This document shows positions 14,900 through 25,053 of a DNA stretch of 64,000 bases, in pieces (positions within the stretch are counted from its first letter, which is position 1; the number at the start of each line of letters is the position of its first letter). A program made the position numbers and the translations under genes. The notes beneath the pieces were generated by a model. It did no database searches. It was given only the letters and a program-made list of their open reading frames with translations, and was not told the origin of the DNA. Source of the stretch: Cyanophora paradoxa CCMP329. Lineage: Eukaryota > Plantae > Glaucophyta. The stretch lies in the NCBI GenBank assembly GCA_004431415.1, contig QPMI01000005.1:62001-126000 (forward strand), in the 5' to 3' direction.

Positions 14900-15203
14900 C
14901 TCGGAGGCTTTCGCGTCTTCGATCTCTGGATCTGGATCTTCGACTGTAGTCCCTCGTGCTCGCTCTCCTTATTTACTGCGCCCTCGTGCTCCTCGTCGTT
15001 CTAGTGTGACTAGTGTTGCTGCGCATGCGTCGACGTCCTTCAGTCTTTCTACTACTTCTCCTGGGCATCGTACTCGTTCTCCTTTGTGATTGGTTATGTT
15101 TTTGTGACTGTCTGCTATATTTTTTATTTGTGATTCCTCTGTTATCTCTTAATATTACTACCTACGGGGGGTTCGCCCCACCGTATACGTAGTCTCTCAA
15201 AAA
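14900..15203 (+). mobile_element. 3' end of a non-LTR-retroelement-like repeat
   Basis: Ser/Pro/Arg-rich ORF end (SGSGSSTVVPRARSP...RTRSPL*), T-rich UTR, hairpin TACGG-GGGG-TTCG-CCCC-A-CCGTA, then GTAGTCTCTC-AAAAA. The terminal ~85 bp recur at ~36710-36813. Confidence 0.55.
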
Positions 15204-18200
15204 CCATACGCATTGTCTTGGCAAAGCGTGCCAGAGCTGGCCATGGCTTCGAATTCGGCGTGATCTGAGTCAAGCTCCGAATCCTGCGCGACATGTGCGC
15301 ATACAAGTAAGCCGAGCTTGGAATGGGAACATAAGCAATAAAAAAGGATCGGGCGAGCCTCGAATTCGAGCACTCCGTCCTCTACAATTTCGATGACAGC
15401 CATCTCGTCGTCGAGAATTTGGGGGCTCAAGGGAGCGCAGGAACCCGGGCCTTGCGCTGAAATCACGATCCTCTGCGAATCCGGCATGCGCATGTACAGA
15501 GATCAGGAGAATCAAACGTAAACGTTAACGTTCAAGGCCGCGGCTCGCACAGCAGCACTCTCTGCCGGGCACTGCGACGCGTCGAACGCCCACTTGGCGG
15601 AACTTCGGCAGTTTGTATCGGAGTAGCTGCATGATCGCGAGGGTGCGGTAAGGATTCCGGATCAATGCGGATCTAACAGGAATGATAGCGCTGATTATAT
15701 AATTATAAATTACCAGGAAGTGCCGAAATGGATGTCCGTTTTGCAATCACCTGAATGCGCTTCCTTGACGGATCTTGTGCCCGCCTACAACGATGATTTC
15801 GATGAAAATCAATCAGCCGTCCAATGATCACGAATTCGCCGAGTCGAACGGAAGGCGACGCAGATCGAAATTGAGCTGTAGATCTAGCTATAGAGCACCA
15901 AGCAACAGTGCGCTCATTATCAGCGATATCGATCTAGACGTACCGGGCAGCGGGCCCAAGCCTCCTCGTCCGAGACCCCCTCCGGCTGGCTGCGCATGCG
16001 CATCTCAAGGATCAGGAACCGAATTCGAAGTTGAAGATCTTTCCCGTTGCGCCGCCAGCCGGCCGCGGGGTTGGACGTTGACGTTGACAGCTAACGCAGC
16101 TGCAGCCCCTAAAAATATGGCGATTGCTAGAAAAGCGACTACGCAATAGGAGCGAGCGCACTACTCCTCGAAGCTCGTGACCGTGGCGGGACCCGCGCAG
16201 TTCGCGCTTGAGAAGCTGCGCAAGCCGAGTTTCAGCGCAGGAGTCGTTCGGATGGCCATGCCGGGCTTGCCAGACAAGCTTGTTCGGAGTGCACTGCCCC
16301 GAATTCACATCCACCGACTTGATCTGCGGAAAAACAATTAATATTTCTCGTTGGGCAGATTTAACTTCATGATCAGCCGTGCTTGGCATTGATCATGAGT
16401 ACGTGCACGCGTAAATGCGTACTGCGACAGTGTCGGACGGGCACTTGGACTTGTCGAACGCCCAAGTTGCACTCGTAGCAGCACGCTCGCAATTCGCATA
16501 TAGTTTAGAGAAGCTGCAAAGGAAAGTTCGTATAACGTTCGCGCGCGGGCGCGGGCGGTGGAATGGAGTCAACGACGCAGTAGCAGCAGCGAAACATGTT
16601 CCACGAACCAGGCAGTCCCTGAATACACTTTCGAGCTGCAATCGCCCGAGCCAGCTTCCTTAAACGAAAGGGTACCGCCCTGTACAATCCGAAAACAACA
16701 TTCAGCTTTAAACCGGTACCTCCGGATCCGGATCCTACGACACAAAATCGATTGTCGGGACCGCGTACCGGGCAGCGGGCCCAGGCCTCCTCGTCCGAGA
16801 CCCCCTCCGGCTGGCTGCGCATCTCGAGGATCAGGAACCGAAGTTGAAGGTCTTTCCCGTTGTGCCGCCAGCCGGCCGCGGGGTTGGACGTTAACAGTTA
16901 ACGCGGCTGCATGCGCAGCCCCTGTAGCTATATATGACGATTGCTAGAAAGCGACCACGCGACAGGAGCGATCGCACTACTTCTCGAAGCTCGTGACCGT
17001 GGTGGCACCCAAGCAGTTCGCGTTTGAGAAGCTGCGCAAGCCGATTGCGAGCTTCAGCGCAGGAGCCGTGCGGATAGCCATGCATATGCCGGGCTTGCCA
17101 GACAAGCGTCTTCGGGGTGCACTGCCCCGAATTCACATCCATCGACTTGATCTGCGGATTGTAGGAAACATTAATTAATTTTTCATTGGCAGAAAAACTT
17201 GAGCCGTGCATGGCGCCATATTGATCACGAGTGCTCGCGCGATCGCATATATATATATAATCTCGCGCGATCGCATATATATATATATAATTTTTTATAA
17301 TGCGCACGGCGAAAGTGTCCGCCGGGCATCTCGACTTGTCGAAAACCCACGTAGGAGAACGCTCGCAACCCGCATTCAATTTCGAGAAGCTGATCATGAT
17401 CATGAGCAGGAACGTTAACGTTCGCAAACTAAAACGACGTCGACGCGGTAGCAGCAGCAAACATATTCCACGAACCAGGCAGCCCCATAATACACTTTTG
17501 ATCTGCAATCGCTCGAGCCAGCTTCCTTAAACGAAAGGGTACCGCCCTGTACAATCCGAAAACAACATTCAGCTTTAAACCGGTACCTCCGGATCCGGAT
17601 CCTACGACAAAAAATCGATTGCCGGGACCGCGTACCGGGCAGCGGGCCCAGGCCTCCTCGTCCGAGACCCCCTCCGGCTGGCTGCGCATCTCGAGGATCA
17701 GGAACCGAAGTTGAAGGTCTTTAATTTCGGGGGTGGAAGCTTAAGGCAGCGGCCCCTATGGCGATTGCAAGGAAAGCGACCACGCGACAGAAGCGATCGC
17801 ACTACTTCTCGAAGCTCGTGCCCGTTACGACACCCGTGCAGTTTGCATTCGGAAAGCTGTGCAGGCCGAGCCTCAGCGCGAGAATCTATACGATAGCTAT
17901 ATAGCCATATGCCGGGCTTAAGCTTGCCAGTGAAGCTTGGTCGGAGTGCACTGCCCCGAATTTACATCCACCGACTTGATCTGCAGAATGTAAAACACAG
18001 TTTTCGTGGGCAGATTAAACTTCATGATCAGCCGTGCGCATGCTTGGCATTGGGTGCTCGCATAACGCGCACGGCTACTGTGTTGGCCGGGCATTTCGAC
18101 TTGTCGAACGCCCAAGTTGCAGTCTTGCTATTACAGTTCAAAGTGGAAAAGCTGCGCAGGACCAAGGCATTCGCATATGAGCACTGGGTAGTGAAATTGT

Positions 18201-24200: not shown

Positions 24201-25053
24201 CAGCTGAAGCGCATTTATTGCATAATTATAAAAGGCAGTCGCACGGGGGGTCATTTCCCAGGACATAGGTGCGCTCCGATTCGGAGCAATTGAGGCTCTT
24301 GTAGCATTCGATGAACGGATGAGCGGCGTGGCACACGGTGCTGTCGCCATTCTTGAAGCTCCAGGTGCCGGCCTGCGCCGCGCGAAAAAGATCGAGGTCA
24401 TTTATAGCTACTAGCTACTACTAGGCTCTAGATCTAGATCTGCACGTGCGAGACAAAAAGCAAAAGAAAGTTAAGTGCCGCACAGGGCAGCGAGCGAAGG
24501 CTTCGGCGTCGGACACCGTCTCCGGTTGGCTGGTACATATATGTATGATCAGTGCTCCTGATCATGCTGATCGTGATATACAAGAAACAAAGACATATGT
24601 ACGCACTACTGACTGACAAAGCTTCCCGAAGCAGGGTCTTTCCCGAAAGAGTAGGTCCCAGAGCAATCGCTGATCGGGCAAACGTGCGCGTGTGATCATG
24701 AGACTAAGTGCACGTGCATGTGTGCCTGGCCATGGATCGAAGTAGATCTAGAGAACGTACGCTGAAGTGTAACATAGCAGCTTGGCTGGAACGCAAGTGC
24801 CACTCCCCGCGGGCCCTCGTTGAATTCCGGCAACGTGCGAGGAATCTGAGCAAACGGCAGACACGAGACCGCTCCTGCGCGATTGACATCATGATCAGTT
24901 CGTTTGGAGCTGCGCATCATGGCATGCAGCTGGATGAATCACGATCGATATCGTCGCGCTGCTCAGTGCGCACTTGTCGATCGTTTGCGCCGGGGTTCCC
25001 GAGCAGTCCGCGTTGGCCCAGCACTTCGCCGGTGTCGTGCGCGGGCGGCCCAT
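15197..25053 (-). CDS. Large Cys-rich tandem-repeat protein (~11 units of ~100 aa, each with two 4-Cys modules), probably extracellular
   Basis: Hand-spliced exons read in frame from ~24800 to 15200. Unit: Y|QPEGVSDEEAWARCP|AETLSVREAGSTKC..VHEGTAC|F/Y..C..TWAFDKSKCPADTVA|IKSVDVNSGQCTPNKLVC|FSSANCAG.TTVTSFEKY. The 46-nt exon A lies at ~15943, 16768, 17635, 18411, 19351, 20319, 21093, 21841, 22765, 23685 and 24482, and differs between copies mostly at third codon positions. The 5' end (24800-25150) and the true stop are uncertain. Confidence 0.85.
23222..23376. repeat. Compound (TA)n(GA)n microsatellite in an intron
   Basis: Directly visible: TA run 23222-23270, AG run 23271-23376. Confidence 0.98.

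Follow-up and report, generated by a model that had tools for sequence, protein, structure and literature searches.

A tandem array of cysteine-rich two-module units on mini-exons in Cyanophora paradoxa, with two apparent gene ends inside it

We analysed a stretch of 64,000 nucleotides from the glaucophyte Cyanophora paradoxa CCMP329 (GenBank assembly GCA_004431415.1, contig QPMI01000005.1, positions 62,001 to 126,000 of the forward strand), called the window here, whose own coordinates are used throughout. Its minus strand carries, from 25053 down to 15197, a tandem array of 54 mini-exons that spell out a cysteine-rich repeat sequence. The array adds a new locus to an orphan repeat family and has expanded by ordinary tandem duplication, and its building block, a four-cysteine module present twice in each unit, appears from sequence comparison to be undescribed and so far known only from Cyanophora. 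A preliminary description of the region had proposed a single gene of about 50 exons read in one uninterrupted frame. That proposal fails at two terminal units, T1 and T2, where the frame closes in what looks like the family's own manner of ending a gene, leaving three reading blocks. We propose, tentatively and at slightly less than an even chance, that the array grew by ordinary unequal crossover and that the second and third blocks are reached by splicing over T1 and T2.

The array consists of whole units in series, each opening with a 46-nt exon A. Eleven exon-A copies lie within it on the minus strand; tblastn recovers 11 of 11 and none outside 15.2-25.1 kb of the window, and a 48-nt probe made of exon A and its donor finds nine matches at no more than three mismatches, against an expectation of zero by chance. 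The earlier count of about 11 tandem units, mostly of five mini-exons, is thus borne out: seven regular units (N1 to N7, the N type) and one variant unit (V1) have five exons each, and the order A-B-C-D1-D2 alternates in every five-exon unit, with no run of variants of one exon type. Besides exon A, exon sizes in these units are 68-74 nt for B, 76-154 nt for C, 50-71 nt for D1 and 51-90 nt for D2. Each exon was placed by its donor together with the acceptor that leaves the frame open, and this placement returns the intron phases given before (A 2>0, B 0>2, C 2>0, D1 0>2, D2 2>2). The borders have AG acceptors and GT donors, with a GC donor (gcaagc) at D1 in five units, and a cysteine codon is split as TG|C both by the B|C intron and by the D1|D2 intron. 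Aligned with each other, the units show short conserved blocks bounded by AG and GT, and between them poorly conserved, indel-rich stretches. The introns are 54-216 nt long, which is typical of this genome, since C. paradoxa has 9.2 introns per gene on average, with a mean length of 86 bp (PMC6704402).

The exons keep their frame while the introns do not keep their lengths. Each exon type retains one length class modulo 3 across all units despite at least ten indel events; if the frame were irrelevant, ten frame-neutral indels would have a chance of (1/3)^10, about 2e-5. In the multiple alignment the exons are 75% identical with 12% gapped positions, and the introns 62% identical with 36% gapped. 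The GC content at third codon positions (GC3) is 0.62-0.96 in exons, and the intron GC content is 0.47. As described earlier, exon A and the cysteine skeleton are conserved and the loops variable: exon A is 96-98% identical across units at the DNA level, with a GC3 of 0.96, and eight cysteines are kept in every unit.

The units also record how the array was made. They are 60-82% identical with introns included, and divergence in alignable introns is 0.11-0.20, which agrees with growth by tandem duplication or by unequal crossover, the latter suggested earlier. The 20 nt before N1, in the spacer between T1 and N1, are identical to those before N6 and N7, and differ by one mismatch from those before the truncated unit V2; because the element before N1 is the same as that before N6 and N7, unequal recombination between units is indicated. 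Since the block that was copied has phase 2 at both of its ends and a length that is a multiple of three, all copies are mutually frame-compatible. Indeed, any D2 donor joins any exon A in frame, with junction codons AA|C, GA|C or CA|C, so the earlier statement that jumps between units stay in frame is correct as far as it goes; the compatibility is an automatic result of duplication, a by-product and not a device for combinatorial splicing.

The frame is broken at two places. Both terminal units, T1 and T2, close with a TAG in frame (23916-23918 and 21342-21344) and lack a splice donor there: at the usual donor position, G|TAGTG, T1 reads TTAGTG and T2 reads CTAGTG. The N and V units have a splice donor where T1 and T2 stop after the GKD..GN motif. 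The family stop is the TAG inside the donor of the internal units, and thus one base decides between a terminal and an internal unit. Exons B and C are fused in T1 and T2, and D1 and D2 are fused too in T2. T2 ends in ..GNVYTH before its TAG, and T1 ends in ..GNAVDF with its stop at the aligned position. A candidate donor inside T2 (GT|GTACAC, phase 2) was not adopted, as its GT simply belongs to conserved Val-Tyr codons. A single frame through the array therefore requires skipping of the T1 and T2 terminal exons. As a separate observation, every N-type D2 donor (for example at 16159-16164) places a TAG in frame directly after the first base of the intron (..AA|G TAG TG), so that a retained D2-A intron would end the protein immediately, at the family's usual C-terminal position.

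Relatives outside the window help to interpret these ends. A search profile (A2) of four contiguous T-unit pieces, run against 1.84 billion (1.84e9) representative proteins, returned two matches only, in a search that could miss N-only relatives elsewhere. Both are Cyanophora paradoxa gene models of EukProt EP00741: P0001 (tig00020563_g11214.t1, 186 aa, E 1e-8) and P0002 (tig00001307_g8125.t1, 110 aa, E 7e-4). They lie on other contigs and are only about 35-55% identical to the window exons, but they have the same four-cysteine module and the same QP.GVS..AFARCP linker as the array. By tblastn against the window, P0001 parallels block 1 from its methionine to its stop (25053-23916, chained E 7e-27), and T2 matches residues 105-186 of P0001 and residues 22-110 of P0002, in each case up to the last residue. 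The C-termini of T2, P0001 and P0002 read ..GNVY[ST]H or ..GGLYSH and then stop. Because these three share the end motif (..GKD..GN.Y[ST]H) followed by a stop, and because the stop of T1 falls at the aligned position, both terminal units are best read as family-type gene ends and not as accidents. In the array, as in P0001, a V-type half-unit always precedes a terminal piece; the two annotated models are of this short V-T type, and neither contains N-type five-exon units. With P0001 as query, a word-based protein search found only P0001 itself, a scan of Joint Genome Institute (JGI) metagenomes found no relative, and an ESM Atlas feature search gave no usable match. No protein model from the window turned up either, so the locus seems to be unannotated; gene structures of this kind are hard for gene predictors (PMC6704402).

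The module shared by these sequences has about 46 residues and four cysteines, in the pattern C-P-x-G-T-x-S-aromatic ... G-x-x-C ... C-[FY]-x(4-6)-C (alignments A7 and A8). In alignment A8, exons B and D1, which encode the first part of the module, and D2, which encodes the second part, stand in register with modules that are contiguous in P0001, P0002 and T2. One unit thus comprises two modules and a conserved linker (exon A), about 104 codons in all, and the locus holds about 24 modules. Both modules have an intron that splits the codon of the third cysteine (TG|C), which indicates that the unit itself is an older internal duplication. The domain was not recognised in the preliminary description, and single exons, P0001 and P0002 and a one-module model have likewise found nothing in Pfam, among PDB sequences or among PDB folds. 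Seven single exon pieces have no Pfam family at E<=10; P0001 and P0002 give noise only (E 0.56-8, far below cut-offs); in these scans no known cysteine-rich domain (EGF, TNFR/Ephrin_rec_like, PAN/Apple, Sushi, WAP and others) is matched at or near its gathering score; and neither profile A7 nor P0001 matches any PDB sequence at E<=10. AlphaFold2 predicts a beta-hairpin-rich fold for one module with alignment A8, at a predicted local distance difference test score (pLDDT) of 71.9; the two-module terminal unit of P0001 was unusable at pLDDT 45.5. For the single-module model, Foldseek gave no match at E<=10 and VIA none at Z>=2, which at 48 residues is no proof of a new fold. An Rfam search over the whole window found nothing.

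The array has the start and end given in the preliminary description, an ATG at 25053 and a TGA at 15197, and between them three reading blocks. Block 1 is the gene G1 (23916-25053), a partial unit V0 followed by T1, whose exon ends and phases give seven exons and 193 codons. Exons 1 to 3 lie at 24974-25053 (with the ATG), 24761-24874 and 24610-24669; exons 4 to 7 lie at 24484-24529 (of exon A type), 24245-24372 (fused B and C), 24048-24140 and 23916-23976 (with the TAG). Just upstream of the ATG, at 25064-25117 on the same strand, alignment to a reference exon D1 and a three-frame view place a degenerate D1-like pseudo-exon with a GC donor and an in-frame TGA.

Block 2 runs from N1 through V1 to T2. 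N1 (22973-23731) has A at 23686-23731, B at 23544-23617, C at 23384-23459, D1 at 23097-23167 and D2 at 22973-23023. Its intron C-D1 is the longest in the array (216 nt) because a perfect (TA)25 run adjoins a perfect (AG)53 run at 23222-23376. V1 (22042-22811) has A at 22766-22811, B at 22542-22612, C at 22334-22409, D1 at 22189-22241 and, at 22042-22131, a long exon D2' with the GKDPASGN motif. T2 (21342-21887) has A at 21842-21887, the fused B and C at 21598-21755 and the fused D at 21342-21528, which includes the TAG.

Block 3 comprises N2 to N7, V2 and a unique tail exon. The exons of N2 (20535-21139) lie at 21094-21139 (A), 20915-20982 (B), 20756-20831 (C), 20652-20701 (D1) and 20535-20585 (D2). 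N3 (19578-20365) has A at 20320-20365, B at 20091-20164, C at 19830-19983, D1 at 19696-19745 and D2 at 19578-19628; its exon C carries the insert put earlier at about 25 residues, which measures 78 nt (26 codons). N4 (18646-19397) has A at 19352-19397, B at 19175-19248, C at 18896-18971, D1 at 18767-18819 and D2 at 18646-18708, and in its 203-nt intron B-C there is, at 18972-19060, a partial copy of the exon C start and acceptor region, a small internal duplication within one unit. N5 (17806-18457) follows with A at 18412-18457, B at 18214-18287, C at 18073-18151, D1 at 17928-17980 and D2 at 17806-17856, then N6 (16981-17681) with A at 17636-17681, B at 17476-17546, C at 17308-17389, D1 at 17099-17151 and D2 at 16981-17031, and N7 (16165-16814) with A at 16769-16814, B at 16609-16679, C at 16423-16513, D1 at 16271-16323 and D2 at 16165-16215. 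The truncated V2 (15551-15989) has only A (15944-15989), B (15714-15784) and C (15551-15626), and its homology to V1 ends after exon C. The last exon (15197-15472) has a phase-0 acceptor and 91 codons up to the TGA at 15197-15199; it encodes an acidic tail and one moderately hydrophobic stretch, and searches gave neither a homologue nor a Pfam match for it. With a GC3 of only 0.58, it is less certainly coding. An AATAAA follows at 15123-15128, 69 nt downstream of the final TGA, and between the two, immediately behind the stop at 15150-15197 on the minus strand, there is an imperfect GC-rich inverted repeat (ACGGTGGGGCG / CCCCCCGT).

The ATG of block 1 is the only start codon of the array, and no ATG lies in the exon-A frame upstream of N1 or N2. 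Blocks 2 and 3 nevertheless keep all splice sites, phases and cysteines. We propose the following. First, unequal recombination would have multiplied the two-module, five-exon unit as a phase-symmetric block, and blocks 2 and 3 would have been coding for most of their history. Second, the D2-type donors at 24610 and 22042 may bypass T1 and T2 and splice to the exon A that follows; these joins would be in frame (CA|C and GA|C), and present-day translation of blocks 2 and 3 would depend on them. With such joins, the two terminal units and the tail exon would be alternative last-exon blocks, and chains of short, medium and long size would result; the product would be a disulfide-scaffold repeat protein with fast-changing loops.

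Several points weigh against this proposal. The skipping of T1 and T2 is something that we infer purely from the sequence; the introns so created would be about 880-900 nt long, ten times the genome mean (86 bp, PMC6704402), and the proximal acceptor, that of T1, appears strong. Unrecognised 5' exons may precede blocks 2 and 3, or these blocks may be untranslated. By eye, the start of neither G1 nor P0001 has a signal peptide, although one would be expected in a disulfide-rich protein, and both P0001 and P0002 are ab initio gene models, unverified as proteins. Moreover, the ratio of nonsynonymous to synonymous differences per site (pN/pS) is about 1.2 in the youngest pairs, N6/N7 and N3/N4, on few changes, and pairwise substitution divergence in exons is about equal to that in alignable introns, an equality that is compatible with a recent loss of constraint as well.

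The spacers after T1 and T2, about 190-200 nt each, bear on where blocks 2 and 3 begin. An unlikely but serious alternative is that the array contains three separate tandem paralogous genes, and that in blocks 2 and 3 alike transcription begins at a promoter of the block's own, with a short 5' exon within the spacer that supplies a start codon and perhaps a signal peptide. This would suit T1 and T2 as family-type gene ends and the dense, end-to-end packing of C. paradoxa genes (PMC6704402); an open reading frame that begins with ATG and runs up to a phase-2 GT donor is present in each spacer, and in the spacer before N2 it includes a hydrophobic run. However, the spacers are homologues of the D2-to-A intron plus a remnant of the D2 exon end, not unique DNA of a promoter-like kind, and an ATG followed by a phase-2 GT within 200 nt is likely to occur by chance. 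No homology links the two candidate 5' exons, and one of them is an AT-rich low-complexity tract, odd for the codon usage of this genome. We did not adopt these candidates in the T1-N1 and T2-N2 spacers, as they are non-homologous, in one case low in complexity, and likely due to chance.

Divergence between the units bears on whether blocks 2 and 3 work at all. It is rather unlikely, in our judgement, that only block 1 functions and that blocks 2 and 3 are young, untranslated leftovers of a segmental duplication or rearrangement of an N-V-T array. Such leftovers would explain the lack of a start codon in frame with N1 or N2, the cutting off of V2 after exon C, where the array stops at a homology breakpoint, the values of about 1.2 in the youngest pairs together with similar substitution divergence in exons and introns, the lack of any protein model from blocks 2 and 3 in the searched protein library, and the low GC content of the array. 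Against this, 43 exons over 8.6 units are free of any frameshift, stop or lost splice site; all their indels are multiples of three and all cysteines are kept, though the introns are full of indels; and an AATAAA stands 69 nt after the final stop. The comparison of divergence between units that had been suggested earlier gives a split answer: pN/pS is about 0.5 over all unit pairs, which speaks for constraint, and the youngest pairs do not follow. Considering the equal divergence of exons and introns and the ratio in the youngest pairs, we suggest that the loops drift almost freely and that what is constrained is the frame, the cysteines and exon A. For the loops, positive selection is not borne out by a ratio of about 0.5 overall and about 1.2 on few changes in two pairs.

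The base composition of the locus deserves separate mention. Between 16000 and 24000 the array has the lowest GC content in the window, 0.50-0.54 against 0.60-0.81 around it, with exon A alone retaining a GC3 of 0.96; the genome as a whole has 67.6% GC (PMC6704402). Short DNA palindromes far exceed the first-order Markov expectation in the array, with 500 hexamers against 191, 219 octamers against 49 and 107 decamers against 12. Part of this excess comes from TA repeats, and a smaller excess occurs in both flanks; it looks like a genome-wide property. About 1.2 kb past the 3' end of the array, at 13849-13984, lies a G-rich tract of about 136 nt that consists mostly of G, with interspersed A.

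The locus is of interest in several respects. It belongs to a Cyanophora-specific family of cysteine modules encoded on dozens of mini-exons, an arrangement that has defeated standard gene predictors, so that the published proteome holds two short fragments only. It also illustrates how such an array grows and breaks, as one substituted base is enough to convert a gene end to an internal exon, or an internal exon to a gene end. If skipping of the terminal units allows the downstream blocks to be expressed, this would be a simple natural system that yields chains of various lengths from a single locus; if they are not so expressed, the locus is an ordinary product of unequal crossover. A further possibility, which we consider quite improbable, is a single transcription unit in which the last-exon block is chosen among T1, T2 and the tail, and units may also be skipped frame-neutrally, giving chains of 3 to more than 20 modules with differing loops. 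If true, one promoter with graded or combinatorial chains would mean that a glaucophyte varies the valency and specificity of a binding protein by splicing.

The preliminary description had compared the locus with the Dscam exon arrays and suggested a variable surface or recognition protein. In Drosophila Dscam1, alternative versions of one exon lie between constitutive exons and are chosen through RNA pairing between a docking site and selector sequences. The two systems are alike in having tandem, frame-compatible and sequence-variable exons for parts of a repeated domain. That the array is one gene of about 50 exons under regulated alternative splicing of this kind, producing many isoforms of a variable surface receptor, is very improbable, even though all unit boundaries are in phase 2, so that unit skipping is frame-neutral, and variable loops sit on a fixed cysteine scaffold. 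The Dscam1 clusters are variants of one exon, whereas the Cyanophora array is a series of whole five-exon units interrupted by two in-frame TAG ends without a donor, and no docking or selector pairing was found: no reverse complement of the conserved intron element that precedes exon A occurs in the window, and of the 94 inverted repeats in the array the 25 longest are without exception TA microsatellites, in a search that could miss short or imperfect pairings. The surface role also lacks support. No signal peptide can be seen by eye at the only in-frame ATG: the start at 25053, a provisional 5' end, is followed by a short polar stretch, as is the start of P0001. The highest Kyte-Doolittle mean over 19 residues of the last exon is 1.46, against about 1.6 usual for a membrane helix, in a stretch that contains K and H. 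A transmembrane anchor in the tail is unsupported at this value.

Closer counterparts are genes in which a block of exons is repeated in tandem, such as human LPA with its kringle IV-2 repeats (two exons per kringle), the nebulin super-repeats and the SRCR repeats of DMBT1. As in LPA kringle IV-2, a multi-exon block for one disulfide domain unit has been copied in tandem with symmetric boundary phases, intron homology reveals recent unequal crossover, and the copy number can vary. The Cyanophora array has the conserved exon order, phases and lengths modulo 3 of such genes, and its homology runs through the introns; one continuous open frame, which these genes have, is broken here by the TAG in T1 and in T2. 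The array thus differs from the LPA type in its undescribed module, its far smaller exons (mostly 46-91 nt) and its stop-bearing terminal units, which stand inside the array.

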